From contig NW_027361993.1 in the NCBI RefSeq assembly GCF_039654945.1, forward strand, positions 10,416,001 to 10,480,000: a stretch of DNA of 64,000 bases, written 5' to 3'. Made by a program: the position numbers and the translations under genes. The notes below the pieces were generated by a model. That model saw nothing but the letters and a program-made list of their open reading frames with translations, did not search any database and was not told the origin of the DNA. The stretch is from Dendrobates tinctorius. Taxonomy: Eukaryota. How positions within the stretch are numbered: position 1 is the first letter of the stretch; each line of letters starts with the position of its first letter. Of this stretch, positions 3,412 to 62,697 are shown in pieces.

Positions 3412-3849
3412 AGGCCCCGTCGCACAAAGCGAGATCGTTAGAGAGATCGCTAATGCGTCACGGATTTTGTGACGCAACAGCGGTCTCGCTACATGTGATA
3501 CATAGCGGCGACCGGCCCCCTCGCTGATCGTGCTCGAATGTCCTGGGCCATTTTTTCATCGTCGGCGTCCCGCTGGCCAGCATGCATCGCTGTGTTTGAC
3601 ACCGACGAGCGACCTCGTTGGCAACGCAGAACTCAGGGACGCAGGCTGGAATCGTTCAGAATAACTACTATGTGACAACACACCAGCGATCCCTAACAGG
3701 TCATATCATTGTCGGGATCGCTGTTGCGTCGTTAAAGAGATGTGCCTGTTTGACATCTTACTAGTGAGCATTTAGCAATACACCAGCGATCCCTACCGGG
3801 TTGTATTGTTGTCGGAATCGCTGGTGCGTCGCTATGTGAAACGGGACCC
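3412..3849. mobile_element. PIF/Harbinger-like MITE
   Basis: TTA-AGGCCCCGTCGCACA..TGTGAAACGGGACCC-TTA; AGCGATC-rich internal inverted repeats. Confidence 0.7.
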
Positions 3850-4075
3850 TTACTCTAGGGTTAGACGTTGATTTATGTTTCCAGGCATGTTTTTCCTGTT
3901 TGTCAAGACATATCAGTATGGAGAGTGAAAGTGTGCTCGGCACAAGCCTTTGAGAAGTGCCATACACATGCTAAAGGGAAACCTCCATTGTGGGTGTGAT
4001 GACACCCACATTACACAGACAACTACAGAAGGACAGTAAGATATACCTATACAATGGGAGTTCTGGTTTCCCTAC

Positions 4076-6373: not shown

Positions 6374-7344
6374 ATGGCCCCATGTAATATGAGGACCCCG
6401 GACCATCAGGCTGACAGCGGCCTCAGAAAGGTAAGAGCCCCCCGACTAGTGGCAGCGTCCCCCCCATATATCTACACGTAGAAACTTATAGGAACAGGAG
6501 TCGGATGTTTTCCAAGTTGTCATCCATAGACATGGCCACTGGCGCAGGGTAATAATGAGAGATTCTTCTTTTCTGCAGCTGAGGAAGCCGGTGATTGAGA
6601 AGTTGAGGAGAGATCGCATTAACAGCAGCATTGAGCAGCTCCGCGTCTTACTGGAGAAGGAGTTTCAGAGACATCAGCTCCCCTCCAAACCGGAGAAAGC
6701 CGATATCCTGGAGATGACGGTCACCTTCCTGCAGCGGCACATGGCGGAGAGAGGTAAGTGTCGTGTCCGCACTCCTCACACCCCTCACGTGTTTCTTAAT
6801 GGATGAGTGCTGTGTTTATTATATTGTTTCTTAAAGTAGGGTCATAAATCTGATTATTCTGATCTGACTTTGATGTCATCCGAGTGCGGTCCGATTTTTT
6901 CCACGGATACATAGACTTGCATTCCCAATTTTGTTCAGACACTCGGATCAAAATTGGACGTCTCCGATTTTTTTTCCTCTGTCATGTGAACAGCCCCATA
7001 GAATATCATAGGTATAAGTGCTATCCTTAAAAAACTCTGATAGCACTCGTGTGGGAAAATTGTGTGCATGACCCTTTATAGAGAGCAGAACAGCCGGTGA
7101 TGGACGCTGTCACTGATATGTTGTCTTTCCTGTTCTAGATGTCACAGCCTCCAGCCAGGCCCAGAGAGAAGGCTACTCCACCTGCGCCCAGGACGCCGTC
7201 ACCTTCTTACCAGTCCCGAATCAACAAGATGGCTCCTTCTGCAGTGGCTACCCTGTATCCTATGAGCTGTCTACCATGAAGACTTCTAAGAAAGCAAGTC
7301 CATTCACTGGGAACAAGAATAAATCTATGTGGAGACCCTGGTGA
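6374..7344 (+). CDS. hes5: HES5-like bHLH-Orange-WRPW repressor, copy 1 (145 aa, divergent C-terminus)
   Basis: Exons 6374-6430, 6579-6753, 7139-7344 with GT..AG introns. Spliced protein: MAPCNMRTPDHQADSGLRK|LRKPVIEKLRRDRINSSIEQLRVLLEKEF..KPEKADILEMTVTFL..|DVTASSQAQREGYSTCAQDAVTFLPVPNQQ..KSMWRPW*. RKPVxEKxRRDRINSSIEQL is the HES5-type basic/helix 1. Paralog number cannot be assigned. Confidence 0.93.
6839..7074. mobile_element. Old MITE-like insertion in intron 2 of copy 1
   Basis: Ends GGGTCAT..ATGACCC with internal TCCGATTTTTT inverted repeats; absent from copies 3 and 4. Confidence 0.55.
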
Positions 7345-8991
7345 ATAATGACCAAGGCATTGACCATATCATGGACTGGTCTAAGATGGTCACTTTATGC
7401 CATTATGGTCTATTTGACCCCGGACGATCCTTAGTACATGGACATTTGTGCAGTGATGATGATAATGACGATGAGACGTCCACTCTGCTAGTTAAGGGGT
7501 GACCTAAAGAAGCCAAGCCTTTCTTATAGAAAGTCCTGTTTTTCCTTCTCTTAGGGAAGTTATATTGAAGTTCCTACATCGGGGACAAAATGTTAACTGA
7601 TTATGAGTTGTGTCATTTTTATGTATTTTCACATATGCCTATTTCTGTGGAGCCACATAGTGCGCTCCTCCTATCAATGAAAAGTCCTGCCGTATTTTGT
7701 ACTCAGGCCATGATGCACCCACGACGAGGGTTAGGACCTGATGGACTCTAATAATATGTTCCTTCTCTTCTGTGAAGATGCTATTTAGGGTTAACACTGA
7801 TAATGTGCATTCCTTAGGTAGACCAATGTCTTGGTCTGTAGCAGTTTGGGGGGTTATTGAGTTGGAAAAAGTTTTTTTATGGTTTGTTAAAAAACTTCTG
7901 TAATTTCTGTGAAATGTATTCATTCACATGCCGAATCAATGTCATTCAATAAGTATGAGATGTCGCATTGTGTTACATGCAGATGTTTGGATTTATTACA
8001 TCGCTGTCAGTACCCAATAAAATAAATTATTATTATTACAGAAATGTTTTCATCAATAAATTAATATAAATAAATAAGAAATGCAGAAGTGTTAAAGTAG
8101 TTGTTCAGGATTAGAAAAATAAAATATGTTCTCTTCTTTCTAAAAACAGCCCCATATCTGTCTGCAGATTTTATGTGACATTGCAGCTCATCCCTACTCA
8201 CTTCAATGGTGCTGAGATGCAATACCACACACGGCCTGTAGATAGGTGGGGCACTTTTTTTGGAAGAAAGCAGTCATGTTTTAATTCTTGGCAAAACCTT
8301 AAAACAATACAGTGTAGTAAGTAAAACAACACATTTCATTCTGCTAAAGGGGTTAGTTATTGGTGGTCAGTCCTTAGTCGGTGCTGTGGCCCCAAGACTT
8401 ACCTGGTCAGTGGGGGTGCCAGGACTCAGACCCCCTATAGATGAAATCATCTGACGTAAGGATAGGCCATCAATATTACAATCCTGGTAATAAATGACAT
8501 TATAGCAACTGTTATGACACTTTACTCTACAAGGCCAATAGTTATGGGTGCCAAATCTGTGGCAATATCTGCCTTTCAGGAGCTAGGGATAGCTGGGTGA
8601 CATAGCTAGGGTTTTGGTTCGGGGGGGCGAAACTTCTGAGTGGGCCGCTAACCAGACAACCTCAGCAGATGACCGCGCTGTTGCCAAAAATAATCTATAT
8701 ATAAAAAGACCAGTATTGACATTACCGCCATATGGTCAGTGGTAAATAATACCAGTCCTACAAAACGTATGGTAGATTACAGCAGAGTTACAGATAATGA
8801 CTTACCGCTGACGTTCTTTCTGATGGAATCGTTCACTTTTCCAGTCTTTCCCATCTGGCCCAGACCGACATGACGACTCCTCCAGCCAGGACTCGGCTAC
8901 AGAGAATACAACAAAGACACGTTTCACTTCTCATATTTTCAGCACTGTCACCAATTGGACTATTCTCAACCTGCACAAACTGCTCATCCTG

Positions 8992-10004: not shown

Positions 10005-10399
10005 AGGTACTGTCACACTAAGCGATATCGCTAGCAATATCACTATAACTTGTGACGTTATAGCGATATTGCTAGCGATATCGCTATGTCTGATACTTAC
10101 CTCCGATCGCTCCCCCGCTGGTTATCGCTGATCGCGCGAGAACGTTCAGGACTGTTTCTCGTCGTCAGCTTCCTGCTGGGCTTCCTGCTGTGACGACGAG
10201 CGACGCGTGGAGCCGGGCGGGAGGACGCAGGATCGCCTGGTGTGACAGGTAAGTAGCGACCCCAGTCCCCAGCGATGTCGCTGGTGAGATCTGCCTGTGT
10301 GGCAACTCATTAGCGACCACATAGCGATGTACTAGCGATCCTGACCGCGTCATATCGCTGGTCGGGATCGCTGGTGCATCGCTAAGTGTGACAGTACCT
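10005..10399. mobile_element. PIF/Harbinger-like MITE
   Basis: TAA-AGGTACTGTCACACT..AGTGTGACAGTACCT-TAA. Confidence 0.8.
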
Positions 10400-10619
10400 T
10401 AAGTGCCCACTTTACATAACAATGTCCCGAATCTCCCCCTGTACAGCTCCACTTTACACAGTATGATGCCCCCTCACTGTATATATACTGACCCCTTAAT
10501 ATCCCCAAACTATTTAATGGCGCCAACACTGTATGATGGCCTCGTCACTATAATCCCCACACTGTATGATGGCCCCCTAGATAGCATCCATATCATAATA
10601 CACCAGATAGTCCTCATTA

Positions 10620-17375: not shown

Positions 17376-19244
17376 TCCCTTATATACTATCCTAAAAATA
17401 TAGTGCCCCTAATGAAGCCTCTTAATACTCCCACACAGTTAAATGAACCCTTCATGGCCTTCACAAAGTATGATGCCCCAAAGATACCCCCCACACACAT
17501 TCATTTCCCCCATATTGCCAATCGTACACATAGAATAATGAACCCCCAGTGCCTCCCACAAACAATATGGTGCCTGCCCTTCCCTATTCCCACAAAGAAG
17601 CCATCCACAAAGTATGATGCACCCTCAGTCCTCCTCTACACACAGTCTGATGCCCTCAGTATCCCCACCAGAGTATGATTGCCCCACATCCCCAACTATA
17701 CATATAATATAATTCCCCACAATGCCCCATTCCCACCAGTATGGTACCCCTCCATTCCTCTCTGTACTGTACCTGTTCCCAGCGCAGCAGGCACGATGTA
17801 GCGGCATTATTGTACCTCCTGACCTCCTGTGCTGCGCCTCAGATGGCACAAGTGAATGGTGGCACATGGAGCAGTTGGCTCCCGGCTCCACCACTATGTT
17901 AAGCTGCAAATGCATCCCAAAGACTCAGACAGCATGACATGCCACTTACCTCCTGGGACAATGGGACATACAGGATGACCATACGGCCATCCTTCCATAT
18001 TGGACATTCATGGCATATCCACAAGATATGCCATAACTGGCTGATAGATGCAGGTCCCAGAAGAGCCGTGACCTGCATATACTATATCTCTAAAAATGTC
18101 CCAAGGCTGCCATGAACAGAGAGGTGGCAGACAGTACATGAGCGTCTATTACTACCGGCATGAGATGGGGCACTGTTCTTGAAATGGGTGGCGGTCCCTC
18201 AGGTGTTTCCCACATCCATTAGACCTTATAGTATATCCTGGGAATATTATCCCACTTCTATCCCCTATTGAAATTATATAGGGAAGACAGAGAAGATAGT
18301 TATCTATTGGACACTGATCTTTTCTGTGGGACCAGTCATTGTCTAGAAGCTCAGATTCTCCAACCTAACCAGTCTGAGAGCTAATGGTTTTGTCTCCTTC
18401 CTTTGATATGGAGGTGACATTTGCCACATAGCCTGCTTGGGATAATAGACACACACTTTCACAAGGTGGTGATGCTGGCCTGGTATTGTCAGGACTCCTA
18501 ATAGCACGTCATAAAAGACAGTTTCACAGATACTGGGAACAGATAGATCACAGTCAGGGCGAAAAGGCTGAAAGGAATCCTGTACTTCAGAAGGAGCTAA
18601 GGTGTTTCTTAATGTGATATCAGATCAGATTTTTGTTTCCTGGTAGGAGAAGTTGGGAATAATCTCGCTGTCAACATAGACATCATGATGTCAAGATTGT
18701 TGGGATCCATGTAATGTCTACAGAAGGGTATAATTGGTTCTGATTGTTTTCCCAGCTTTTTGTTAGCAGCACTCTTCATAAATGAGCGTTATTATCAGAA
18801 TCACTGTTTTTACTAGCAGGATGGATTAAATATACAGGATTGCGAAAAATTATGTTTCCCACCACTTCAGTACGTGACATCAGTCGAACATCCATAAATT
18901 GTGATCTGTATTCAGATATTTTGAAAATAGTGAGATATTTGACCATATAGTATATTACAGAGTTGCAGAACATTATATAATGAAAACAATAAAGGGGTTG
19001 TCCATTCTTTTTCTTTAGGAGCGCACCGCCACTTTGCATCCAAGCTTCCTGCTTGCAGGGTGCAGTGCTCTCCCGAACACCAGTTTGGACCTGTGACTTT
19101 GTCATGCCAGTGCACTTTCCCATCTTGGGGTAACTTTGCCTCTGCAGCATTGGAGGAGCACAGGGACAATGAAGTTGGCCAGATTCAGAGTTGCAGGAGA
19201 CTACAAGCATGGCCTCCTTTGCCTAGAAAACTAGCCATCTATAA

Positions 19245-19626
19245 AGGCCCCGTTACATTTAGCAATGCACCAGCGATCGTGACCACGATATGACCTGGTC
19301 AGGATCGCTGATGAATTGCTAAATGGTCGCTAGTGAGCTGCCAAACAGGCAGATCTCACTAGCGACGCAGCAGCCGTCGGCGGTTGCGCTTACCTTTCAG
19401 ATACGGCGAGGGTGATCGTCTTCCGCCTGCGTCCATGGCTCGCTCGTCGGCGTCAGCAGGAAGCCGACGAAGAGAAATGGACCAGGCCGATCTTGCGCGA
19501 TCAGCGATAGCCAGCTGGGGAGCCGGTCGGAGGTAAGTATCACATGTAGCGATATCGCTAGTGATATCGCTGCTGCGTCACAAAATCGGTGACGCTTTAG
19601 CGATATCGCTATGTGTAAAGGGCCCT
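19245..19626. mobile_element. PIF/Harbinger-like MITE
   Basis: TAA-AGGCCCCGTTACA..TGTAAAGGGCCCT-TAA. Confidence 0.7.
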
Positions 19627-20603
19627 TAATACACGGCAGAGGTGGCTGGTAGCCTAGCCAAAGAACTGTACGTTATAAAATAAAAAATCCATCTGTTTTT
19701 GAAAAAGTGGTAAATTGCAAATTTGCTCACTCATTTTAACAACCTTTTTAAGTTTTATTAACATTGAACAAAAACCCTTTGAAGATGTGTTCCCGTGATA
19801 AGTTTTTGGTGAGTTTTTGATGCTTTATTTTCGCTGCATCAATTATCTTGGATTAGAAATCATGGCCACATTTGTATTTGTTCTAGTCCTGGACAACATG
19901 TTTAATAGGATTTGTAGCAAGGACTGCAGCAAATAAATGGGAAGGTGTTTCCCAGCAGACATAATCGGATTCCTGATTGTTTTAAGATAATCATAGATAT
20001 AAGCTTGCTGATAGACATGTTCATCAATTAAAGAACATATGTGATTTGACTCTTGCATGCAGGCAATGAATAAGCGGATGCCTGACAGCTGCAAAGCTTT
20101 GTAGAGCCAATCAATGTCAAAAGTTTAAAAAGCAAAAATACAAAAAGCATTGCTTGAAAATAGGACACTCACAATATTTATAGCAATGAATCCATATTTG
20201 AGGTGCAGAACACAGAATAACTGTAGATATTATAATGTATCCAACAGGACAAATTAGGGAAACTGCAAATAAATAAAATCTGTATAAAACCTTAATCTCA
20301 AAAAAAATAAAAATGCATTCTAGGAGTGATGCATTTAATGCCTCACAAAAAACAATGACATCACATCTAGAATACTTTTGTTTTGTTTATCAGTTAGGTT
20401 TTGATGATTTTTCTGGCACCAAAATATATTTTTTGCTGTGCATCAAAAGAAATAAGATAAATAAAATAAATGTACAAATGCATTAATGTAATCTACAACA
20501 TTTCTTGCCTGATTAGTACTGTCAGGGTCTATGTCATCAACAGGGCCAGATGTTCCCTGACAGTGTCACAGTCTGAGAAAGGGACTAATCTACTGTGCCC
20601 CCT

Positions 20604-20741
20604 GCAATGTGTGTGATTGGATGCAGAGTGTGAGAACCGTGCACAGGACCCTGCTCCACACATCATTTTGCTGAAGGATTGCCCCATATAAAAACCAAAC
20701 CAGCCACTGTCATCTGTTCCCAAACTGACGGCCATGTAAGT
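20604..20741 (+). promoter_or_regulatory. Orphan hes5-type promoter with a very short putative first exon
   Basis: GATTGG, GTGTGAGAA (20628-20636), TCCACACATCATT (20655), TATAAAA (20687) in the same order and spacing as the hes5 promoters; then GCCAT|GTAAGT. Confidence 0.6.
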
Positions 20742-20766
20742 TGTGTGACTTATAAAATGTGAATGT

Positions 20767-20804
<38 letters not shown>

Positions 20805-20811
20805 TATTATA

Positions 20812-23800
20812 TTAATTAAGACTTCAGTCTGCATTGTGATTCCTATAAGTGTGTGCTAGAAGTGTGAAGATTAATTTAAGAATTAAAACCAGAATTGAAC
20901 CAGAAGGGAACTGAAGGTAACTGTACACAGTCACTGTAAACAATGTTTCTGTTTGTTTTCACCCCTATAATCCTTCACTTTCTGCTAATTCCCCTAATCC
21001 CTACTCCTAGTAAGGAACTGTTCATCTCTTCTTCAATCCTCCCCATCCACCTCACCTCCACCTCAAAACTGTTCCTTACCATACAGTCTCCAAACACAGA
21101 CAGCCCCCTCATTCCCTCTCCTGCTCCCACCTGCTAACACTTTCTCTGCTCCTTCTCACTGCTGGTGATATCTCCCCAAATCATGGTCCTCCTCACCACA
21201 TTCCCACAGTCATTTCTACCTCCCATCCACGCTCTATCACAACCTTCCGTAACCTCTCCAACCTTATACCCATTCACCCGGCCCCCGCTTCCCCAGTCCC
21301 ACTAACAGGAGCTCTGTGGAACGCTCGCTCTGTTTGCAACAAGCTTTCCTACATCCATGATCTTTTTGTTACTACCAAACTTTCCTTCCTCGCCATCAAC
21401 GAAACCTGGCTCACCCCTTCTGACACAGCCTCTCCTGCTGCACTTTCATATGGTGGCTTCCACCTTTCTCACACCCCCCGCCCCAGCAGCAAACATGGCG
21501 GAGGAGTTGGTTTTCTCCTTTCAGATACCTGCTCCTTCACCCCAATCTCACTGCCACCCTCTGTTACCCTCCCTTCCTTTGAGGTGCACTCTGTGCGCAT
21601 CTACTCCCCCTCCCACCTCCAACTGGCTGTCATCTACCGCCCCCCAGGGCCAGCCACCACCTTCTTTGACCACTTCACCACCTGGCTACTTCATTTCCTT
21701 TCCGCGGACATCCCTACTATCATCATGGGCGACTTCAACATCCCCATTGACACTTCCCTCTCAGCTGCCACTAAACTCCTATCTCTCACTTCCTCCTTCG
21801 GCCTCACTCAATGGTCTTCTACAGCCACCCACAAAGATGGCCACACACTGGACCTCATCTTCACCCAACTCTGCTCCCTATCTAACCTCTCTAACTCACC
21901 TCTTCCTCTCTCTGACCACAACCTTCTCACATTCTCTTCCCTCTTCACTCCATGTCTACAATCCCCACCCCACAAACTTTCACACCCTTGCAGAAATCTT
22001 AAACACCTTGACCAACACTCGTTCTCTGAATCCCTTCTCCCTCTCACAGATATAAGTTCCTTACACAATGCGGATGACGCTGCCGCTCTATATAACACCA
22101 CAATAGCTGTAGCTTTGGAATCCGCTGCCCCACTTACACATACCAAAGCTCACAAAATCAACAGACAGCCCTGGCACACCAGCCTGACCAAAGTGCTGAG
22201 GCGAGCTTCCAGGGCTGCTGAGCGCAGATGGAAAAGATCCCACTCCAACGAGCACTTCATCGCATTCAAACAGTCCCTCACTACTTTCAAGACCACACTC
22301 GCCACAGCTAAACAAACCTACTTCTCATCTCTCATATCCTCCCTGTCTCACAACCCTAAACAGTTATTCAACACCTTCAATTCTCTCCTCCACCCCCCAG
22401 CACCTCCTCCCTCCCCACTCATCTCAGCTGAAGACTTTGCCTCATTTTTCAAGCAGAAGATTGATAACATCAGAGAAAGTTTTGGTCAACAACCCCCAGA
22501 ACCCTTCCTCCCGACTTCCCAGCCCTCCACCTTCAAAACCAACTTCTCCACCATTACAGAAGATCGACTCTCCACTCTACTCTCAAGATCACATGTCACC
22601 ACCTGTGCACTCGACCCGATCCCATCCCACTTCATACCAAACCTCACCACAGTCTTCATCCCAACCCTAACCCATCTCTTCAACCTATCACTAACAACTG
22701 GTGTTTTCCCCTCAAGCTTTAAACATGCCTCCATCACACCTATCCTCAAAAAGCCCTCTCTTGACCCATCCTCTGTATCTAGCTATCGCCCTATATCACT
22801 TCTCCCCTACGCCTCCAAGCTACTGGAACAACACGTCTACCTTGAACTGTCCTCCCATCTCTCTTCTTGCTCCCTCTTCGACCGCTTACAATCTGGCTTC
22901 CGGTCACAACACTCCACTGAAACTGCCCTTACTAAGGTCACCAATGACCTCTTAACCGCCAAGAGCAAGCGACACTACTCTGTCCTCCTCCTCCTGGACC
23001 TGTCGGCTGCCTTTGACACAGTGGACCATTCCCTATTATTACAGACCCTCTCATCCCTCGGCATCACAGACTTGGCCCTATCCTGGATCTCATCATACCT
23101 AACAGACCGGACATTCAGCGTCTCCCACTCACACACCACCTCCTCACCTCGCCCCCTATCTGTCGGAGTCCCACAAGGTTCAGTCCTTGGGCCCCTGCTG
23201 TTCTCTATTTACACCTTTGGCCTGGGACAGCTCATAGAATCTCATGGCTTTCAGTATCATCTCTACGCTGATGACACACAGATCTACATCTCTGGACCAG
23301 ATATCACCTCCCTACTAACCAGAATCCCTCAATGTCTGTCCACTATTTCATCCTTCTTCTCCGCTAGATTTCTGAAACTCAACATGGACAAAACAGAATT
23401 CATCATCTTTCCCCCATCTCACGTGACCCCCCCTACGAACCTATCAATTACAGTAAATGACTGCCCACTCTCCCCAGTCCCACAAGCTCGCTGCCTCGGA
23501 GTAATCCTTGACGCTAATCTCTCCTTCAAACCACATATCCAAGCCCTTTCCACTTCCTGCCGACTTCAACTCAAAAATATTTCACGAATCCGTTCATTCC
23601 TCACCCAAGAATCTGCAAAAACCCTAGTCCATGCCCTCATCATCTCTTGCCTTGACTACTGCAACCTCCTGCTCTGTGGCCTCCCCTCAAACACTGTCGC
23701 ACCCCTCCAATCTATTCTAAACTCTGCTGCCCGACTAATCCACCTGTCCCCCCCGCTATTCCCCAGCTTCTCCCCTCTGTCAATCCCTTCACTTGCTCCC

Positions 23801-24319
23801 AATTGCCCAGAGACTCCATTACAAAACCCTAACCATGACATACAAAGCAATCCACAACCTGTCTCCTCCATACATCTGTGACCTCGTCTCCCGGTACTTT
23901 CCTGCACGCAACCTCCGAGATCCTCACAAGATCTCCTTCTCTACTCCCCTCTTATCTCCTCTTCCCACAATCGCATACAAAATTTCTCTCGCGCATCACC
24001 CCTACTCTGGAACTCTCTACCACAACATATAAGACTCTCACCTACCATCGAAACCTTCAAAAAGAGCCTGAAGACCCACCTCTTCCAACAAGCCTACAAC
24101 CTGCAGTAACCACCGATCGACCAAACCGCTGCATGACCAGCTCTACCCTCGCCTACTGTATTATCACCCATCCCTTGTAGATTGTGAGCCCTCGCGGGCA
24201 GGGTCCTCTCTCCTCCTGTACCAGTTATGATTTGTATTGTTTAAGATTATTGTACTTGTTTTTATGTATACCGCTCCTCACATGTAAAGCGCCATGGAAT
24301 AAATGGCGCTATAACAATA

Positions 24320-24337
<18 letters not shown>
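20812..24337 (+). mobile_element. L2-type LINE, near-complete ORF2 (APE endonuclease + RT)
   Basis: In-frame [46 protein letters not shown]; frameshifts near both ends; 3' stem-loop GCGCCAT..ATGGCGC and (TAA)n tail. 5' boundary approximate. Confidence 0.93.
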
Positions 24338-24355
<18 letters not shown>

Positions 24356-24668
24356 TATTTATATAGCGCCATTGATTCCATGGTGCTGTACATGGGAAAG
24401 GGTTACATACAAAATACAGATATCACTTACAGTAAACAAACTAACAATGACAGACTGATACAGAGGGGAGAGAGGACCCTGCCCTTTCGGGCTTACATGC
24501 TACAGAATGGTGAGGAAGGAGACAGTAGGTTGGGGGGTTGCAGCAGCTCCAGTGATGGTGAGGCGGTAGCTCCAGTAGTGGTGAGTGGCAGCAGGGTCAT
24601 TGCAGGCTGTAGGCTATCCTGAAGAGGTGGGTTTTCAGGTTCCGTCTGAAAGATCCGAAAGTGGTTGA
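24338..24668 (-). mobile_element. L2 3' fragment, tail-to-tail with the previous element
   Basis: (ATT)n followed by the reverse complement of an L2 3' end. Confidence 0.8.
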
Positions 24669-24706
24669 TATCTATCTACCTATTATCTATTGCTCTATTA
24701 TTTATC

Positions 24707-24923
24707 NNNNNNNNNNNNNNNNNNNNNNNNNNNNNNNNNNNNNNNNNNNNNNNNNNNNNNNNNNNNNNNNNNNNNNNNNNNNNNNNNNNNNNNNNNNNNN
24801 NNNNNNNNNNNNNNNNNNNNNNNNNNNNNNNNNNNNNNNNNNNNNNNNNNNNNNNNNNNNNNNNNNNNNNNNNNNNNNNNNNNNNNNNNNNNNNNNNNNN
24901 NNNNNNNNNNNNNNNNNNNNNNN
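24707..24923. other. Assembly gap
   Basis: 217 N. Confidence 1.
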
Positions 24924-27736
24924 TAGCTGCATATGGTATATATGATATCTATGTACAGTACCTACAAGAAGCAAAATAAACATAAACCCTGCTGTATCTA
25001 AATAAGTAAAAAGCAAAAGTGCATGTAAATAACACAGGGTTCTTAGTAATAGTTTTTTTGATCAAAAATAGCATCTATCTATATACAGTGTCTACATTCT
25101 TTATTTCGTTCTGACGCAGACCAGATACCAACATTGGGTATCGGAAATGTTATTGATCAAAAAGAAAGTAGAATTTTTCTTCCTGCTGAGTAAAACCAAG
25201 TAGTAAACTATCTGAAGAATGCATGGGAGCAGCCGGTAGGGCAGGGAAGTGTGACATGGAGTGTGCTTCAGAGTCATTTGTGAATTGTCAAACTCAACAA
25301 TTACGACCAGTACTGAGATGTCTTTATTGTCAGCTTTAGCGAATGATGGGAAAGTGTGTTGGGATATACAAGGTGCCACTTCTAGCCCATCAGTAATGCC
25401 TGCAGAGACTCTGCTGTCTGGCAGAGGTGTGTGTAGTAGCACATTGTGTGTGCTGGGGTGATGTATGCACTCCCTATGTGACACTGCAGGGAGAAAATAA
25501 TTTACATCCCCTAGTATTCTCAATATCCTGTGCTGATTCAGTTCATAATTTATCCTTGCAGCATTTCATTTACAAAGCCATATAGTTCAAAGGGGGTCAT
25601 ATACAGATTACTCCTAAACTTCCCTTATGGTGGCTGCAAGTAATGGCGATTATTGTAGTTATTGTATGTAGGTCCACGCAGAGGGTTTGGAGATCTGTTT
25701 TCGACAAACTCTAAAAATGATAGCAAATGAATCAGAACAGCATTGTGCTTTTGTGTAGATTAAAACGTTACTACTACCAATATTAAAGGGTTTGTCTGGT
25801 ACTATGTTATTTCTTATGGTTTTTGCGCCTGGCACCAATCTCTTCTGGCTCAGAGGAGTCACAGACCGCTTCTGTGCACTGATGGTGATTCTGCGGCTTC
25901 TACTGATGCAATATCGATAGGGAAGCAGCTTCTCTTCCTCTCTGTTCTGTTGACTGGGCGTGACTGCTAATGTCATGCTTATAGCCGACTCCCCACTGCC
26001 TAACTGCGGGAAGCCAGCAGTCAATAAACATGACTTCGGAAGTCATGTCACATTGACAGAGCAGCCCGAAAAAAAAGCTGATCAGTTGACATGAAGTAGA
26101 ATCGCGGGCGGCGGAGGTCTGTGATTGCTCCTAGTCGGCGCTGGACAGAACAGGCAGGTAGTTAAAGGGGTTGTCCCGTCTAAATTGTTAAGTCTGCAGT
26201 TGTTGTGTGCTGTGAGGATTTGCCAGTATCTGAGCCAGGAACGGCGGTGATGTATGCATTATACCTGCTCCTGGGCCAAACCCATCTAGTGGGCGTGATC
26301 TCGCTTCATACATTTTCATGGAGTGAGGCTCCTCCCTGTGAGTGACACAGCCACCCAGTGGGCGTGGCTATATACTTTAATGCTGTACACTAGATGTGTT
26401 CGGCCCAGCAGCAAGCATATTGCATATATCATCGCCATTCCTGGCTCAGAAACTGGAGAATCCTTGCAGTACACAGTACGTTCGCTGGGGGGATGCATAT
26501 GTCTGTAGTCTCATAGAGGGACTGCAGACTTTTCATTTTAGACCGGACATCCCCTTTAAATAAATCAAACTGATAGACATGCAGTATAACCTTACTTATG
26601 CAATATGTTACCAAGACGGGGTGCATTTTACTCTGTGCTGGTGGCATCTCCAGAATGTTGGGTATCATCAGCATGGTGCTTTCCAGGGGTGCACCTGGCT
26701 GTCTATGTAAAATATTAATGACTAAAACTCTAGTCCAGTGAATTACGATGTCTATTTTCTACTGCTAGCAATGGTTTCCTTTACTTTTCAGCTTTGGAAA
26801 AATCTATGTAGATAGATCCTGTGAAGAACCATCGAGGAGCCCCATCCGCCCCTCTGGTATCAAACTATCTGTAGGGGAAATCAGTTTTGCCAAATGTGAT
26901 GCCGGTCATGGAAAGTCTGCACTGGGCTTTACACATGAAGCATATTACTGGGAACATTTCGTACATTTCATTTTTAGGGCGGATTCTCTGCTTTTGTCAC
27001 AGTAACAATCCATTTTTGAAACATTTTAAGATAAGCAGAATTTTATTTGTATATTTATATAAAAATTCCACCTTAAAGGGAAACTGTCATCAGGGAAATG
27101 CAGGCAGATCTGCTGGCACCATGTCAACCCTGAAGTACAGTTTGGCTGAACGGAGGAACGGAATATAAAAAGCTAGAATTAATACAAGCCAAGTGACTTA
27201 TCTACCTTGTTAGCATATTCATCTAAAAGTGATATAAGACAGATGGAGAAGATTTATGAGTGCAATAAAGCGTCAAGTGTTAAACTGTGTTGGTGTATCA
27301 TGTTTTATAGCATCTAACACAGCCTGTGTGGCCTCTGCTCTGTTCCCCAGAATCCCGTATATTGATGACACATAAAGTTGGGAGCATCTTGGCTCCAGAG
27401 CTTTGGGCAGGGCTGTAACTTTTGTAACTTTTGCTCCCCTTCTGAGAGATATACCAAATCTAACCCAGTCCACCACGGTCATGTTTATGGCCAGTGTCAT
27501 ACAGGTACATACATGTCAGATTACATTGCATTGTCTGCTTCAATTCTTTTTTTCCCAGGGCCAGACATGTGCCCTTTTGATGTTGAAACTGTGACACATA
27601 ACTGTGACATTGACTCCTATTCTGTTCCCATACCTGCTCAGACATCCGGTATAGCCGAAGCCTAAGGAGCCATTTACTACTCACCGGTCTGTAAACAGAG
27701 GAAGGGTTTTGTGACATTCTGTTACTTTCTTAAAGA

Positions 27737-28343: not shown

Positions 28344-29691
28344 TATATATATATATGTGACACACATACTGTATATATATATATGTATTTATATTGCATA
28401 CAGAGATAGAAGAAAAGTCGGTAATACATCTGCCGGGTTCTGTAAAATCACTGCAGGAGCAGACAGGATAGAAGAGATGGATTACTTACAGTAAATACAA
28501 ATAGAGTAAGTAGATATATAGATGTCAGTGACAAATACAGAGTAAGGGCTCATACTCACTTGCGAGAGACTCGCACCATTCTCGTGCGAGTCTCTCGCAC
28601 TAATACCCGGCACTGCCGCCGGCACTTGGACCGGAGCTTGCGGCTACATGTATTTCTATGCAGCCGCACACTCCAGTCCCAGTGCCAGCGGCAGTGCCAG
28701 GTTATCATGCAAGAGACTCGCACGAGAATGGTGCGAGTCTCTCGCAAGTGGGTATGAGCCCGAATACAAAGGGTAGCCAGCTCACTGTCTTTAGATGCCC
28801 AGCGTGCACGGACAACGCACTGACCGGCGGGAATAGAACAAATAGAAAGAAAAGTCCAGCTTCTGGTAGAAAAAAAAAAATTTTCATAAAAATTTCCTTT
28901 ACTCCAAAAATGATTAAAAATCCGTATGCAAACAGTGGGGAACAGGAGAACACATGGCGACACGTTTGGAGTGCAAGCAGCGCTCTTTCCCAAAACCTAA
29001 TGTCAAAAAATTTCCCTCAAACCTTATATACAAGAATGAAACTCTCCCATTGGTGAAAGATCATACGACATTTAAAATACATGCAAAATACAAATCAACT
29101 AACCTGTTTAGTATCACTAGATATCACAAAATAAATCAAAACAATGAGATTATACATCATGAGAAAAACACATCTAATAATGACACATAACATCTCGACG
29201 AAAATTTTAGCCGTCTGGTCTGGATATCTTGTTCCCAGCTGGAAAATCCAGAAGGCTTCTTTGGTAAGTAAAAGTCTCCTGAGAAAATCCCGAAGGCTTC
29301 TCTGGTAAGTAAAAGTCTCCTGAGATCACCACCTCGGGGCGGTAAATTCACTCTTTTAAATGCAAAAACCTGGAATGAAGATAGGGATCTGTAAGGACAA
29401 GTAATAAAGTGTTTAGATGCAGCAGATATATTCCAGTTATTCAAACTACTGGTATTAGTGATGTCATTTAAATGTTCCTTGATGTGTGTCTTCATTTTCC
29501 GACTAGTACATCCAATATATAATAAATTACAAGGCACGCATCGGTTTCAATAAATGACATCATCTTAATTACAATTAATGTACTGTTTAATTAGATTAGT
29601 TTGTGTACCATCATAGTTATGAAAAGTGCTGCATGGGTATGCAAATTTACAAAGTTTACATTGCATTGCCCCACATTTAAAGAAACCCTTA

Positions 29692-39670: not shown

Positions 39671-39900
39671 GGGGTTTCCCACACTCCAGCTCACATCTAT
39701 TATCTCCTGGATTGGAGCAGATGGACACACGTCCATTATCCCGGCTGCGGTGGGATTGGAGGGTGAGTGTGGGAACCTCTTGTAAGTCCGCTCTCCACAC
39801 ATCATTATGCAGGGAGAGGGGTATATAGAGGGGAGGCCGCTCACTAGTAGACAGCTCCTGCCCCACACAGCACAAGACTACAGACTGCCAGACCTGCACC
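39671..39900 (+). promoter_or_regulatory. Notch-responsive promoter of copy 2
   Basis: TTTCCCACAC, E-box CAGATG, two GATTGG, GTGTGGGAA, TATATAG and N-boxes; near-identical to the other copies. Confidence 0.8.
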
Positions 39901-41081
39901 ATGGCCCCATGTAATATGAGGACCCCGGACCATCAGGCTGACAGCGGCCTCAGAAAGGTAAGAGCCCCCCGACTAGTGGCAGCGTCCCCCCATATCTCTA
40001 CATGTAGAAACTTATAGGAACAGGAGTCAGAGATGTTTTCCAAGTTGTCATCCATAGACATGGCCACTGGCGCAGGGTAATAATGAGAGATTCTTTTCTG
40101 CAGCTGAGGAAGCCGGTGATTGAGAAGATGAGGAGAGATCGGATTAACAGCAGCATTGAGCAGCTCCGCATCTTACTGGAGAAGGAGTTTCAGAGACATC
40201 AGCTCCCCTCCAAACCGGAGAAAGCCGATATCCTGGAGATGACGGTCACCTTCCTGCAGCGGCACATGGAGGAGAGGGGTAAGTGTCGTGTCCGCACTCC
40301 TCATACCCCTCACGTGTTTCTTAGGCCTCTTTCACACTTCAGTTTTTTACAATCAGTCACAATCCGCTAGGTTTTGAAAAAAACGGATCCTCAATTTTCT
40401 TTTGAGGATCCGTTTTTTTCCCCATTGACTTCCATTACTGGCGGATTGTGACGGATTGCCGTCCGTTGCATCCGTTTTTTTTGAGGATCCGCCAAAACTT
40501 GCTGTCCGTCACCATCCTCAAAGATTTCAAAACGGAGCTTGCAACGTTTTTTTTTTCTGGCGGATCCTCCAGACACTAATTTAACCCGATATTCTTCCTG
40601 AGTGCCGGACAAAAAAAAAATCTCTCTCTCTCGGCCAGCGTTTCCTTTAAATTTCCTCATTTTCAGGATCCGTCTGAAAACGGATCCTGTGCCATCCGTT
40701 CACATCAGTTCAGAATGGATCCGCTTGTCTGCCTTTTTGGCGGATTTGAACTGATGCAAAAAACTGAAGTGTGAAAGAGGCCTTACCGAGAGCATAGCAG
40801 CCGGTGATGGACGCTGTCACTGACATGTTATCTTTCCTGTTCTAGATGTCACAGCCTCTAGCCAGGCCCAGAGAGAAGGCTACTCCACCTGCGCCCAGGA
40901 CGCCGTCACCTTCCTGACCCAGCACAAACAGAGCAACCTCCAGATCCAGCTGCTGCAGAACCTCCCTGGGGCTCACACTGTGGTATACAGGGCCGCATCT
41001 CCTCCTGTATCTCCTGTCTACCAGACCCCCAGCAAGTACAGCCCCCCAGACAGCAGCACAGCCTTGTGGAGACCCTGGTAA
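39901..41081 (+). CDS. hes5: HES5-like repressor, copy 2 (155 aa)
   Basis: Exons 39901-39957, 40104-40278, 40846-41081. Intact bHLH and Orange region (EGYSTCAQDAVTFLTQHKQSNLQIQLLQNL); ends ALWRPW-TAA. Confidence 0.95.
40324..40782. mobile_element. 459-bp PIF/Harbinger-like MITE in intron 2 of copy 2
   Basis: TIR GGCCTCTTTCACACTTCAGTTTTTT, TTA duplication; the empty site GTTTC-TTA-CCGAG is seen in copies 3 and 4. Confidence 0.92.
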
Positions 41082-46404: not shown

Positions 46405-47125
46405 ATGGCCCCATGTAATATGAGGACCCCGGACCACCAGGCTGACAGCGGCCTCAGAAAGGTAAGAGCCCCCCGACTAGTGGCAGCGTCCCCCCCATAT
46501 ATCTACACGTAGAAACTTATAGGAACAGGAGTCGGATGTTTTCCAAGTTGTCATCCATAGACATGGCCACTGGCGCAGGGTAATAATGAGAGATTCTTCT
46601 TTTCTGCAGCTGAGGAAGCCGGTGATTGAGAAGATGAGGAGAGATCGGATTAACAGCAGCATTGAGCAGCTCCGCATCTTACTGGAGAAGGAGTTTCAGA
46701 GACATCAGCTCCCCTCCAAACCGGAGAAAGCCGATATCCTGGAGATGACGGTCACCTTCCTGCAGCGGCACATGGCGGAGAGAGGTAAGTGTCGTGTCCG
46801 CACTCCTCACACCCCTCACGTGTTTCTTACCGAGAGCAGAGCAGCCGGTGATGGACGCTGTCACTGACATGTTATCTTTCCTGCTCTAGATGTCACAGCC
46901 TCCAGCCAGGCCCAGAGAGAAGGCTACTCCACCTGCGCCCAGGACGCCGTCACCTTCCTGACCCAGCACAAACAGAGCGACCTCCAGGTCCAGCTGCTGC
47001 AGAACCTCCCTGGGGCTCACACTGTGGTATACAGGGCCGTATCGCCTCCTGTATCTTCTGTCTACCAGACCCCCAGCAAGTACAGCCCCCCAGACAGCAG
47101 CACAGCCTTGTGGAGACCCTGGTAG
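46405..47125 (+). CDS. hes5: HES5-like repressor, copy 3 (155 aa)
   Basis: Exons 46405-46461, 46610-46784, 46890-47125; 105-nt intron 2; ends ALWRPW-TAG. Confidence 0.95.
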
Positions 47126-47152: not shown

Positions 47153-48243
47153 CTGGGAGCTGTGTACCCCCAGTATACCTGAGATCCGGGATCTGTGTAC
47201 CCCCAGTATACCCGAGAGCGGGGAGCTGTGTACCCCCAGTATACGAGACAGTGGGGAGCTGTATACCCCTCCAGTATACCTGAGAGCAGGGAGCTGTATA
47301 ACCCCAGTATTCCTGAGTTCTGTGTACCCCCAGTATACCTGAGAGCTGGGCGCTGTGTACACCCAGTGTATACCTGAGAGCTGTTTTACCCCCAGTATTC
47401 CTGAGTGCTCTGTGCCCCCAGTATTCCTGAGAGCTGTGTACCCCCAGTATACCTGAGAGCTGGGGGCTGTGTATCAACAGTATACCTGAGAGCAGGGAGC
47501 TGTGTACCCCGAGTATACCTGAGAGCAGGGAGCTGTGTACCCCGAGTATACCTGAGAGCAGGGAGCTGTGTACCCCCAGTATACCTGAGAGCAGGGAGCT
47601 GTGTACCCCCAGTATACCTGAGAGCTGGGAGCTGTGTACTCCCAGTATACCTGAGAGCAGGGAGCTGTGTACCCCCTGTATACCTGAGAGCAGGGAGCTG
47701 TGCACCCCCAGTATACCTGAGAGCAGGGAGCTGTGTACCCCGAGTATACCTGAGAGCAGGGAGCTGTGTACCCCCAGTATACCTGAGAGCTGGGAGCTGT
47801 GTACCCCCAGTATACCTGAGAGCAGGGAGCTGTGTACCCCCTGTATACCTGAGAGAAGGGAGCTGTGTACCCCCTGTATACCTGAGAGCAGGGAGCTGTG
47901 TACCCCCTGTATACCTGAGAGCAGGGAGCTGTGCACCCCCAGTATACCTGAGAGCAGGGAGCTGTGTACCCCCTGTATACCTGAGAGCAGGGAGCTGTGT
48001 ACCCCCTGTATACCTGAGAGCTGGGAGCTGTGTACCCCCAGTATACCTGAGAGCAGGGAGCTGTGTACCCCCAGTATACCTGAGAGCTGGGAGCTGTGTA
48101 CCCCCAGTATACCTGAGAGCAGGGAGCTGTGTACCCCCTGTATACCTGAGAGCAGGGAGCTGTGTACCCCCTGTATACCTGAGAGCAGGGAGCTGTGCAC
48201 CCCCAGTATACCTGAGAGCAGGGAGCTGTGTACCCCCAGTATG
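47153..48243. repeat. 33-bp minisatellite in the 3' UTR region of copy 3
   Basis: Unit GAGAGCAGGGAGCTGTGTACCCCCAGTATACCT, about 30 units. Confidence 0.95.
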
Positions 48244-50381
48244 CCTGTGGATGTCTTCTTGGTGTAATTACTCTGGGATTTTCTCATCCATCATATAATC
48301 TGCTGTCGGCTGCAGATCTCCTGTGTGCACTCGGTTCTATATCCTTCTATGAAGAACAGTCCTGGTCCTATATGGACACAATGTAGGGATATTCCCAATG
48401 ATACAATGTATCAGATTATATATAGTGTGTTCTGGCTCTATAGAGAGTGACGTATTGTATGTATATATCAGTGCTGCAGTGCAAAGCATTGCAGAATAAT
48501 GGAGGTGAGACCCCCGGCCTGATATATACAGTAGATATTATATATCATTCAGTCTTGTAATCCTACAGACTTCTGTACAGTAATATTTACATTGCTAGAT
48601 TCAGTGTATAGATGTACTGTGTACAGCGCCCCCTATAGTTCACTATTATTAGTGGTTAATGCTCTGTATATTGAATATTCAATAAATTAACAGGAGGCAT
48701 ATTTTCTATGTATGTTCATGATTATTGATTATAATGTAATGCTATGCAGGATGAAGTCATATACTTTACAACAGTATACAATATTTGTAATAATTGTCTC
48801 CTTATAGTTCACTATTATTAGTGGTAAATGTTCTATATATTATACTGTATTATGTGCGTCTGATAAATTATCAGAATATTCTAAATTCTATGAATTGTAC
48901 ATTATGTGATATGTATTATGGATTATTTTATTCCACGGTTTTCCTATATGGTATGCAATATTTGCAACAAATGTTAGAAAGTTATGTATAATATACACTG
49001 TATTGTGCAATATTTGCAGCATTACATCAGTGATGTTCCGTATATTATACACTGACTGCACGTGTCTGTGTACTTTGTATACTCTTATTAGTGGACAATG
49101 TTCAGTTGTCATATATTTTGAAATAAGTTGCAATCAATAAAATAAATTATTGTACATACGCTAAGTTTTCATTAATGTTGTGATGTTTGTACAACGGTAT
49201 TATCCTTAGCCCATCCCCCCATCAAAATCATTTTTCACTGGGGTCCCCCTTTTCAGAATGGTTTTTCATTTATCTCCGCCCCTCCCCTCCGTGATTGACA
49301 GCTCTGACTGATGGAAAAGAAGTAGGTGAGTGGGTGCACTGAACTGTTCGGGCACTATAAGGGTGCACCCAGCCCCTGTGCTTGGTATGAACAGTCATTT
49401 TGTGCTGACAGCAGCACTCCCAGGAATATCTAGATTTCTTAGTCCCTTTGCATAAAGCGTGCTGTACAGTGTGTATGTGGTCCTATATGTACTGATCACT
49501 GTCTTGTATGATATCAGTATAGCTGCTCCTCTTCTCTACCTTGTGACCACATTACAGATTAGCAGCTCACACAGCAGATTCTTTGCTAGACCTGAATTTG
49601 ATTTTTTTAGTGTAACCCTATGAGACTCACATAGAGGCGTTTGTAGGATTGCACTGAGAAAGTGATTTTTGGTCCGCACAAAAGTCTCCATGTTAGACAG
49701 CCAGTCTGAATTGTGGTCTCATGATGCAAAAAAGGATTGAGGATCGCTGATCACATGAGAAGAGAAAGTTAGAAGAAAGAAAAGTAACATTACAGCCATA
49801 ACTTCATAGCTACCATCCTGCTGCATTCTGCCAATTAAATATCCCTCCCATCTTTCTTCAGTCCCCTCCAACATAAAGTCCCATATAAACAACATCAATC
49901 CCCTGTAAAGATAGTGCAAATACACTCGAAGGATCCGGTCCATCCACCACGTCAGTGTTCTGTGGCCACTGTACAGGAGCCCTGAAAACCATTTCTTATT
50001 TGATGGCATCAGCCGCTCTTCTTTTGATTAGCCGATGCCACTATCATCTTTGCAGCGTGATACACATGTGATACCTCCAGTATAATGGCCAAAGGACCGC
50101 GTCCTGTAAATCCATTCGCCCCTGTAACATACAGCTGTGATCACACCAACATTGCTCAATGGTATTGATAAAGATTGGCTAATATTTTAAGCCGAAAGCT
50201 CAAAAATCCCATTTTAACCAATCCAAAATAAAACATAATGTGACAACTGCACATCGCCCCTGCAAAATGGAAGCTCAGATTGGCTGAAGATTGGCAATCA
50301 TAATGATGAGGTCGCTCTGATGTAAGATGGGGTGGGTATACATAGTTTATTCTGCCATACTGATTTGCATTTTGCCTCATT

Positions 50382-60036: not shown

Positions 60037-60919
60037 GATTTGCCACTGATTTTCCTGAGTGTTATGAAAAGAAGAAGAAAGTCAATGACTTTAAAATCAA
60101 CAGCAAAATAATACCAATCATTTTACAGAATACACTCCTCAGCTGCTGCAGAACATCATAAAACACACTGAGGAGCCAATATCACATTTAATTGCTGCAA
60201 TCGTTTTCCTTTCCACATTAAAACCTTTACATGATGATTTGGTGTTGAGATCAAAGTGAAAAAAATATCAGTTTGCTATGTGTGCAAATATCACAAGTAA
60301 TGTGAGTCCCAATGGGGACAGTGATAACCATGTTGTCTGTAAAGCGCTGCAGAATACAATGGTGGTATAAAAGCATAATAAATGGGGGAGATGGAGCTGA
60401 CAGTCTCTACATGTCCATGGGCAGCATTAGGGAAGAAATCAATCTATTTATCAGGATCATTAATGCATGAAGCGACTCATTATCTGCAGATAAGATCACG
60501 CTGCACTTAATAGGATTAGTTGCCATTTTATAAATTGTTTTCCTACTATGTAAATATATATAATGTTATCTCGTGCCCCACACTCTACTATATATCATCC
60601 TATGTGATGCTGAGGATAATGAGGTGTCACCGAGATGTCAGCCCTCTCTTATCACACCACCACATCCTTTGTCCTCAGAGACCAGACCCAGGACCCTCAT
60701 CTCCAGCACATGAGATATCACATGTAAGTCAATTAGAAAATCCTTATTATTTCCCTATCAAGTAATTGTCACTAAGTAAATCAGCACAAAAATATTTTGG
60801 TAAATAACTATTTGCTTTAAACAAAAATTTGCTGTGTATAAACTACAACAGTGGACGGAGCAGCGAGTCAGAATTCAAGATTTTTTAAATGTATTATATA
60901 AAGGATTTTTTAAAGTATT

Positions 60920-62429: not shown

Positions 62430-62697
62430 CAATGTGTGATTGGTGCAGGTCCCATCTTGTGGCCGGGGTTTCCCACACTCCAGCAGCCTCTATTATCTCC
62501 TGGATTGGAGCAGATGGACACACGTCCATTGTCCCCGCAGCGGTGGGGTTGGAGGGTGAGTGTGGGAACCTCTTGTAAGTCCGCTCTCCACACATCATTA
62601 TGCAGGGAGAGGGGTATATAGAGGGGAGGCCGCTCACTAGTAGTCAGACAGCTCCTGCCCCACACAGCACAAGACTACAGACTGCCAGACCTGCACC
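62430..62697 (+). promoter_or_regulatory. Notch-responsive promoter of copy 4
   Basis: Same motif set, almost identical to 46137-46404. Confidence 0.8.

Follow-up and report, generated by a model that had tools for sequence, protein, structure and literature searches.

A geneless hes5-type promoter shared by two frog families, a candidate regulatory relic in the hes5 cluster of Dendrobates tinctorius

Introduction

The hes5 clusters of frogs are a classic example of tandem gene expansion. Their genes respond to Notch signalling during neurogenesis and segmentation. The window analysed here, a stretch of 64,000 nucleotides from Dendrobates tinctorius (RefSeq assembly GCF_039654945.1, contig NW_027361993.1, positions 10,416,001 to 10,480,000), covers part of such a cluster. 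At 20505-20697 on its plus strand it carries a hes5 promoter of the Notch type that is complete and yet lacks a gene, hereafter called the orphan. What is a promoter that has no gene? The original prediction, made from the window alone, had proposed a Notch-inducible transcript, a promoter kept after the loss of its gene, or a gene partly hidden in an assembly gap. In this study, the orphan was compared with the hes5 promoters of the window and of other frogs, and these answers are weighed against each other.

Results

The four hes5 genes of the window

The window contains four hes5 genes, all on the plus strand (ATG to stop at 6374-7341, 39901-41078, 46405-47122 and 62698-63415, copies 1 to 4). 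Each has three exons and a WRPW end, the gene bodies measuring 0.7-1.2 kb, and frog Hes5 proteins, those of poison frogs being the closest, were retrieved when the exon 2 ORF of copy 2 was used as a protein query. The copies match exactly the RefSeq proteins XP_073417840/839 (P0007/P0137, copy 1), XP_073417842 (P0121, copy 2), XP_073417841 (P0133, copy 3) and XP_073417843 (P0123, copy 4). Since these accessions are numbered consecutively, a protein-coding model between copy 1 and copy 2, where the orphan lies, is unlikely.

The genes differ in some details. The RefSeq protein of copy 2 (128 aa) begins at the exon 2 methionine, with exon 1, the donor GTAAGA and the acceptor intact; the promoter of this copy (region 39793-40130) is devoid of four bases, TCAG, at the presumed start, which are present in the other three copies. 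The first exon of the copy 1 isoform P0137 lies outside the window. In copy 4, the main CCAAT box (62540-62545) reads GGTTGG and not GATTGG, the same change as in the Engystomops orphan described below.

Identity among the four genes, 92-99%, is limited to the segment between about -180 and the stop codon, and the similarity of copy 1 reaches only to intron 2. Such a confinement is a signature of gene conversion. The tail of copy 1 (7138-7341, 145-aa type) is also found in proteins of Phyllobates, Ranitomeya, Anomaloglossus, Engystomops, Leptodactylus, Bufo and Dendropsophus, and copy 1 is not a recent chimera but an old paralogue, in which neighbouring copies converted the part from the promoter to exon 2.

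A fifth promoter and its parts

The orphan aligns with its orthologue in Engystomops pustulosus and, less closely, with the promoters of live hes5 genes (six-way alignment). In its upstream part (20546-20576) it carries two blocks of the orphan lineage, CCAGATGTTCCC, which includes a CAGATG E-box, and the 16-mer CAGTGTCACAGTCTGA. They are followed at 20589-20595 by a degenerate SOX-like site, CTACTGT, which reads CTATTGT in the Engystomops orphan and in the gene-attached promoters shown. A reverse CCAAT box, GATTGG, is located at 20615-20620, 8 bases 5' of the RBPJ/Su(H) site TGTGAGAA (20629-20636), and GAGTGTGAGAACC was found at 20626. Exactly 16 bases after TGTGAGAA starts a cryptic reverse partner site, GCTCCACA (20653-20667), within the exact 14-mer CTCCACACATCATT (20654); both this spacing and the cryptic type of the partner are those of live frog promoters. 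The TATA box TATAAAA (20687-20693) lies ~50 bases 3' of the RBPJ site and is 2 bases farther from the 14-mer than in the four genes. The CCAAT box, RBPJ site, partner site and TATA box are all in register with the four hes5 promoters of the window, and the alignment of the five promoters is ungapped between the CCAAT box and the 14-mer.

Such an arrangement is not expected by chance. The 14-mer CTCCACACATCATT occurs exactly five times in the window, always on the plus strand, in the four gene promoters and the orphan, against an expectation of ~0.007 per shuffled window, and neither the composite pattern nor the RBPJ+17+partner pattern was found in any of 300 dinucleotide-preserving shuffles. 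A looser rule, an RBPJ site followed by a TATA box within 35-75 bases (window and first seven loci) or 30-85 bases (last two loci), returned hes5-type promoters and one unrelated hit in Dendropsophus (L010). The four motifs on which the original prediction had based its fifth hes5-type promoter (GATTGG, GAGTGTGAGAACC, CTCCACACATCATT and TATAAAA) are thus all in place, and the promoter itself is confirmed by the motif-significance check that had been suggested. The same prediction had likened CAATGTGTG-ATTGG to the upstream boundary of copies 3 and 4. The letters do occur there (46137 and 62430), but at a non-homologous promoter position in the six-sequence alignment, and the stretch matching CAATGTGTG reads GCAATATGYCATSAC in Engystomops, so this resemblance is probably a coincidence.

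Several other features were noted in and around these promoters. The live promoters each carry a second RBPJ site in reverse orientation (46177, 39676, 62470 and 6122), 91-115 bases upstream of the forward site; at the corresponding position of the alignment the orphans retain only TTCCC, a degenerate remnant. The single-copy island with the orphan is closely preceded by a very abundant repeat (19236-19800), with a summed contig depth of ~6-8 x 10^5 in two genomes and related copies at 10015-10400 and 3439-3852. An Rfam scan of 20300-21000 gave one upstream miRNA-family match, which was rejected as sub-threshold (26 bits against a gathering score of 96).

No hes coding sequence was found outside the four genes when the window was searched by tblastn with 120 frog Hes5 proteins as queries, and WRPW occurs in the window at the four gene ends only, which bears out the view that the orphan drives no visible hes gene. 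In particular, no bHLH, Orange or WRPW coding was found between 7341 and 39900. The best stray match (29029-29160, E 0.009 with the 120 queries) was an AT-rich low-complexity translation and was rejected. When the region 19000-26000 was compared with the window by blastn, only repeats and microsatellites were matched, and none of the four hes5 gene bodies or flanks. Neither the orphan nor its Engystomops orthologue heads a bHLH-Orange-WRPW gene.

An orthologue in Engystomops pustulosus

The Engystomops orthologue is located at ~17603-17409 on the minus strand of locus L009 (GCA_040894005.1), between two of the four hes5 genes called there. A blastn comparison of window positions 20510-20697 with L009 17603-17409 gave 75.9% identity over 195 bases (E 4e-36), while the MAFFT alignment of the two orphans has 148 of 188 bases identical (79%) and two indels, of 7 and 3 bases. 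In Engystomops the CCAAT box has become GGTTGG and the TATA box is kept as TATAAAAAA. The two species have in common a set of orphan-only states, namely TGTGAGAA, GCTCCACA, GGATG(C/T)AGAG, GAA.GATT, TATAAAAA, CCAGATGTTCCC and CAGTGTCACAGTCTGA. Blocks CCAGATGTTCCC and CAGTGTCACAGTCTGA are identical between the two orphans at 12/12 and 16/16 positions, respectively, and in the six-sequence alignment no live promoter has either of them in the orphan form. As to the RBPJ site, every other hes5-type promoter recovered from the ten loci and the window, whether gene-attached or belonging to a pseudogene, has TGTGGGAA (core GTGGGAA); TGTGAGAA, with a G to A change in the core, is confined to the two orphans, which therefore lack the high-affinity form and fit the looser YGTGRGAA.

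In both species the orphan lies between hes5 genes and has the same orientation as these genes. In Engystomops a (TATC)n array starts 6 bases past the TATA box, in the same position and on the same strand as in D. tinctorius, and the 3.1 kb of gap-free sequence that separate the orphan from the next hes5 promoter (L009:14313) contain no hes coding. The upstream neighbour of the Engystomops orphan, P0026, carries the 3' flank of D. tinctorius copy 3, so the gene order around the orphan differs between the species. The synteny comparison called for by the original prediction thus revealed a geneless orthologue in a rearranged hes5 neighbourhood. Because the geneless state and the adjacent repeat are common to both species, a hes5 gene would most simply have been lost once, before the two frog families split. 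The hyloid families, the poison frogs and leptodactylids included, diverged near the end of the Cretaceous.

Other non-coding sequences are also shared by the two clusters. Window segments 8080-8277, downstream of copy 1, and 60581-60693, upstream of copy 4, are 72-76% identical to L009:15859-15484, the Engystomops interval between the orphan and the next hes5 gene; these islands are conserved and their order relative to the orphan differs between the species. A 33-base minisatellite follows copies 3 and 4 (47155-48247 and 63446-64000), and a single unit of it follows the Engystomops orthologue (L009:19356-19314), which indicates that the array expanded in the poison-frog lineage.

No orthologue of the orphan was found in the 10-kb flanks from Ranitomeya, Phyllobates and Dendropsophus. 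Downstream of the copy 1 orthologue, Ranitomeya imitator (L004) is collinear with the window to 14660 only and Phyllobates terribilis (L005) to 14508 only. No similarity to the window was seen in the 10 kb upstream of R. imitator P0130 (L006) or in those upstream of the copy 2 orthologue of P. terribilis (L008), and the Dendropsophus locus (L010) holds a type-b pseudogene only. Given the limit of the flanks and the heavy transposon turnover, these blanks are uninformative. The promoter of a P0039-type gene (L003) was considered as a relative of the orphan and rejected on promoter comparison.

Live promoters and pseudogenes of frog hes5 clusters

The live promoters of the window and of Ranitomeya, Phyllobates, Engystomops, Dendropsophus and Spea share with the orphan one order and spacing: an E-box and a SOX-like site, a reverse CCAAT box, 8 bases, an RBPJ site, 16 bases, a weak reverse partner, ~20 bases and a TATA box. 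In Spea bombifrons, which has four tandem hes5 genes, the promoters read ...CATTGTCCC...TGTGATTGGCTGCTGAG-TGTGGGAA-16 bases-TCCTCACACATCATTATGCAG...TATATAGAGGG. The orphan differs from all of these in having no downstream gene, in having TGTGAGAA in place of the invariant TGTGGGAA, and in its own conserved upstream blocks.

Its relationship to them varies along its length. The promoters of the D. tinctorius genes are 80% identical to those of Spea over 115 aligned bases and 90% identical from the 14-mer to the TATA box. The orphan is 88% identical to Spea from the CCAAT box to the RBPJ site; its 14-mer is identical to that of the D. tinctorius genes, and over the partner site and the adjoining CATCATT it is 100% identical to these genes and 86% to Spea. 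In contrast, the 14-mer-to-TATA segment and the upstream ACACACGTC.ATTGTC block, which are 80-90% identical between Spea and the D. tinctorius genes, reach only 38-50% between the orphan and live promoters. Moreover, the orphan shares TGTGATTGG.TGC.GAG and the spacer 8-mer GTGCACAG with the Spea promoters, the latter displaced by one base in the orphan-Spea alignment, and the four neighbours have lost both. These Spea-shared states, together with the segment identities, mark the orphan as a separate old promoter lineage and not a recent copy. The spacers, described in the original prediction as diverged, have indeed diverged from those of the four neighbours, but part of the orphan spacer is the older state, shared with Spea and Engystomops promoters.

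The hyloid clusters also contain hes5 pseudogenes which, like the orphan, are products of birth and death within the cluster whose promoter homology has outlasted the coding sequence. One is common to D. tinctorius (L001:19657-20527) and Ranitomeya imitator (L002:15044-15885). Up to 10 bases past the TATA box the promoter of this pseudogene is intact, with 88-94% similarity to live ones. Beyond this point ~500 unrelated bases stand in place of exons 1-2, and the decayed exon 3 contains stop codons and ends in WRPW. Another, the type-b pseudogene of Dendropsophus ebraccatus (L010:16500-16000, minus strand), has the full upstream grammar with TGTGGGAA, a G-rich run in place of the TATA box and, after it, an internally deleted bHLH fragment. 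These pseudogenes retain recognisable decayed exons, stops, WRPW and live-type TGTGGGAA promoters, whereas the orphan has no coding trace and represents a promoter lineage of its own, common to two families.

In Spea, a further sequence beside the four hes5 genes (L007:19300-19100, minus strand) carries CATTGT, GATTGG, TGTGGGAA, a 16-base gap, TTCCGCAT and TATATAGG, with an ORF of 15 codons after it. Nothing Hes-like was found to be encoded on the minus strand of L007. This sequence may represent a second Notch-type promoter that lacks a gene, or else the beginning of a gene that escaped detection.

Binding sites are better kept than the bases between them

Over its whole length the orphan pair differs at 21% of positions, which is no better than the neutral or synonymous level: between D. 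tinctorius copy 3 and its Engystomops counterpart, used as a yardstick, pS is 0.29 and 22% of fourfold sites are different. The differences are unevenly distributed, however. In the E-box, SOX-like site, CCAAT box, RBPJ site, partner site and TATA box, whose limits were partly chosen post hoc, 42 of the 44 positions match, as compared with 106 of 144 elsewhere (Fisher p = 0.0008). Two motif differences were thus observed where ~10 would be expected if the sites were unconstrained, and the divergence of the non-motif part is close to synonymous. For this small sample with partly post hoc motif limits, a neutral relic in which all positions change at the neutral rate does not describe the data. 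Moreover, the 188 bases carry only two small indels, while most intergenic DNA of the two species is unalignable, as is intron 1 of orthologous genes (148 versus ~330 bases).

Since the overall identity is at the synonymous level, the case for constraint rests on the 44 motif positions and the scarcity of indels. In this small sample of two species they provide moderate evidence for purifying selection on the binding sites and their spacing. The orphan thus combines homology to live promoters over ~190 bases, the absence of a gene in two families and a conservation biased towards motifs, as would a repurposed promoter. The conservation check also turned out in favour of the original prediction, the orphan being conserved in a second frog family with its factor sites better kept than the bases between them.

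On the other side, the strongest features of live promoters are weakened: the RBPJ core by its G to A change in both orphans, the SOX-like site in D. tinctorius and the CCAAT box in Engystomops. In addition, the orphan and the live promoters share CATCATT within D. tinctorius and CATTATT within Engystomops, which may be a sign that part of the element is renewed by short gene conversion.

On balance, we lean towards the view that the orphan is a promoter relic kept as a Notch-responsive regulatory module. Among the proposals made for this locus, that of a promoter kept after gene loss fits best, with a geneless orthologue in a second family and better conserved factor sites. The orphan could instead be the dead promoter relic of a lost fifth hes5 gene, whose motifs were kept by chance, slow mutation or short conversion. 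We regard this as a serious but unlikely alternative. It is in keeping with the frequency of hes5 pseudogenes in these clusters (the one shared by L001 and L002, that of Dendropsophus), the synonymous-level identity of the pair, the weakened key sites, the absence of visible RNA in small contig-only runs, and the co-variation of CATCATT and CATTATT with live promoters within each species. It accounts poorly for the near-absence of changes in the motif positions and for 188 bases staying almost free of indels amid unalignable surroundings; nor could conversion from live promoters have supplied the best-kept blocks, which are orphan-specific.

Downstream sequence and transcription

As described in the original prediction, an ATG-TAA (20734) overlapping a strong donor, GTAAGT (20736), is present downstream of the TATA box (20734-20741, plus strand). 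It has no counterpart in Engystomops and is indistinguishable from chance. When 20694-20766 was compared with the 5'UTR, exon 1 and intron 1 of six live genes, the local alignments obtained were equalled by 15-80% of shuffles. Three specific proposals were dropped for alignments no better than those of shuffles: a match of CCATGTAA to gene codons 3-5, a match of CTGAC..ATG to type-b start contexts, and a model with a 57-base deletion in exon 1. The ATG-TAA/GTAAGT feature therefore looks like chance.

The left part of a (TATC)9.8 microsatellite (TRF) follows at 20767-20804 on the plus strand, and then, at 20806-24668 on the same strand (boundaries inferred), an inserted block that contains a LINE and has a palindromic 3' part. 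The LINE has an endonuclease/reverse-transcriptase ORF at 21584-23881 (Pfam), and repeat depth rises from ~20819. TATC-like sequence resumes at 24670-24706, after the block, and on the simplest reading the block (~20806-24668) appears to have landed inside a (TATC)n array. Next comes the assembly gap (24707-24923), the only N run of the window, flanked on both sides by TATC/TA-type simple repeat similar to the array at 20767-20804; the gap is most simply read as microsatellite sequence missing from the assembly. The order of microsatellite, LINE and gap is that given in the original prediction, which had named the LINE an L2; here it is assigned as a LINE only.

Of the words of 19650-20940, 93% are present in four DNA runs, all from one sample. 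No RNA-labelled run containing this region was found with the index of 31-letter words, to which a first exon of 16-24 bases is invisible. The X1 short-read contig corresponds exactly to 19603-20764 and ends at the microsatellite. In X5, a close relative, 15% of the sampled words are present, as would be expected at an identity of about 95%; the X5 contig over 19562-20265 is in line with this estimate, and X5 covers the single-copy island at single-copy depth. Depth over 19972-20707 is zero in X15 (guessed to be RNA) and 0-1.7 in X21 (kind not on record), both being small contig-only runs, and LINE copies aside no RNA contig lies over 20708-20818. In runs that are small and contig-only, such silence of the orphan is weak evidence.

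These observations bear on the possibility that the orphan is an active promoter whose transcript begins with a tiny non-coding exon (start at ~20712-20720, donor at 20735/20736) spliced far downstream, either to exon 2 of copy 2 (acceptor at ~40100) or as part of a long non-coding RNA. A GTAAGT within ~50 bases of the TATA box would suit this explanation, and the next gene on the same strand is hes5 in both species. The start of the copy 2 RefSeq product in exon 2, despite an intact exon 1, would fit a non-coding alternative exon, and the copy 1 isoform P0137 shows that distal first exons are modelled in the cluster. In Engystomops, however, the donor and the ATG are absent, the microsatellite comes directly after the TATA box, and inspection by eye of the ~400 bases downstream of it revealed no strong donor. 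With, in addition, no significant similarity between the post-TATA sequence and a live 5'UTR or exon 1, and no RNA contig over the place, a spliced first exon of this kind is improbable. A Notch-inducible transcript, as in the original prediction, may still start here, but the specific signs of it are weak: the micro-exon is chance-like and restricted to D. tinctorius in the pair, and no RNA contig covered the place in the small runs available.

A hes gene concealed in the gap is very improbable: a hes5 body is small, and without the LINE block the gap would start ~40 bases past the microsatellite, at the expected place of exon 2, but the repeat on either side of the gap is of TATC type, neither exon 3 nor WRPW is found in the sequence after it, the orphan has no intact exon 1, and the Engystomops orthologue is gap-free and hes-free over 3.1 kb.

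Discussion

How a promoter could outlive its gene

The promoter relic kept as a regulatory module, the reading to which we incline, would have arisen as follows. The gene body of a former hes5 paralogue would have been lost before the poison-frog and leptodactylid lineages separated, leaving ~190 bases of promoter grammar: the upstream E-box, the SOX-like site (damaged in D. tinctorius), the CCAAT box, the RBPJ site with its partner, and the TATA box. In both lineages the factor positions would have stayed near-unchanged while the intervening bases drifted at about the synonymous rate. Factor sites kept amid drifting spacers suggest that the module is most likely still bound by RBPJ/Notch and partner factors. 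With its 16-base partner gap, CCAAT box and TATA box, it could assemble a Notch transcription complex, and we infer from these sites both its Notch response and its mode of action.

The module would act as a cis-regulatory element of the hes5 cluster, for example as an enhancer for the neighbouring hes5 genes. Alternatively, it could be the promoter of a non-coding RNA, or could supply the hes5 gene that follows downstream with an alternative first exon. There is no conservation 3' of the TATA box, so the sequence of the RNA, if one is transcribed, is unlikely to matter. We favour a regulatory element, the sequence being compatible with an enhancer as well as with a non-coding or alternative promoter.

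A more far-reaching proposal, which we put forward only tentatively and think rather doubtful, is that the orphan is a dedicated Notch/RBPJ landing pad of the hes5 array, selectively kept, orphaned at least since the hyloid radiation, and tuning the whole cluster. It could do so as a shared Notch-responsive enhancer, as a low-affinity competitor site, or as a promoter for which the passage of transcription through the adjacent (TATC)n/GATA repeat counts, and not the RNA produced.

If the module is indeed functional, nature would have provided, in two frog families, a clean case of a promoter that became a regulatory element after the loss of its gene, with its Notch-pathway sites kept. If it is inert, the locus cautions that within tandem clusters dead DNA can stay conserved at the level of motifs.

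Comparison with known systems

Sequence-paired sites consist of an RBPJ site with a head-to-head partner at a gap of 15-17 bases, ideally 16, a spacing needed for cooperative NICD dimers (PMC7685452). In mammalian Hes5 the partner is 'cryptic', that is, off consensus, and the low-affinity class comprises sites with up to two differences (PMC7685452). The orphan resembles the paired sites of mammalian Hes5 and Hes1 in its canonical-type forward RBPJ site and its reverse partner after 16 bases (PMC7685452). It differs from mammalian Hes5 in that its forward site has one mismatch to TGTGGGAA, which is within the low-affinity class, and in having no downstream gene. The 190-base module could therefore serve as a test bed for what a weak RBPJ site and a cryptic partner do by themselves, a question that is open for mammalian Hes5 (PMC7685452).

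By descent and architecture, the orphan reads as a member of the hes5 promoter family that fails two of its defining features, TGTGGGAA and a hes gene. We found no literature on promoters or solo promoter elements in frog hes5 clusters, and a survey of these clusters (PMC8320183) is silent on promoters. In mammals, the repurposing of promoters into enhancers is rare, with about 1 case in 5110 ancestral promoters (Carelli et al. 2018, PMC6172195). The orphan is like these cases in that an ancestral promoter persists as a conserved non-coding element without a transcript. In the mammalian study repurposing was defined by chromatin marks and transcription, whereas here the argument for continued function is one of sequence conservation. 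The orphan would add a case to a known kind of element and does not define a new one.
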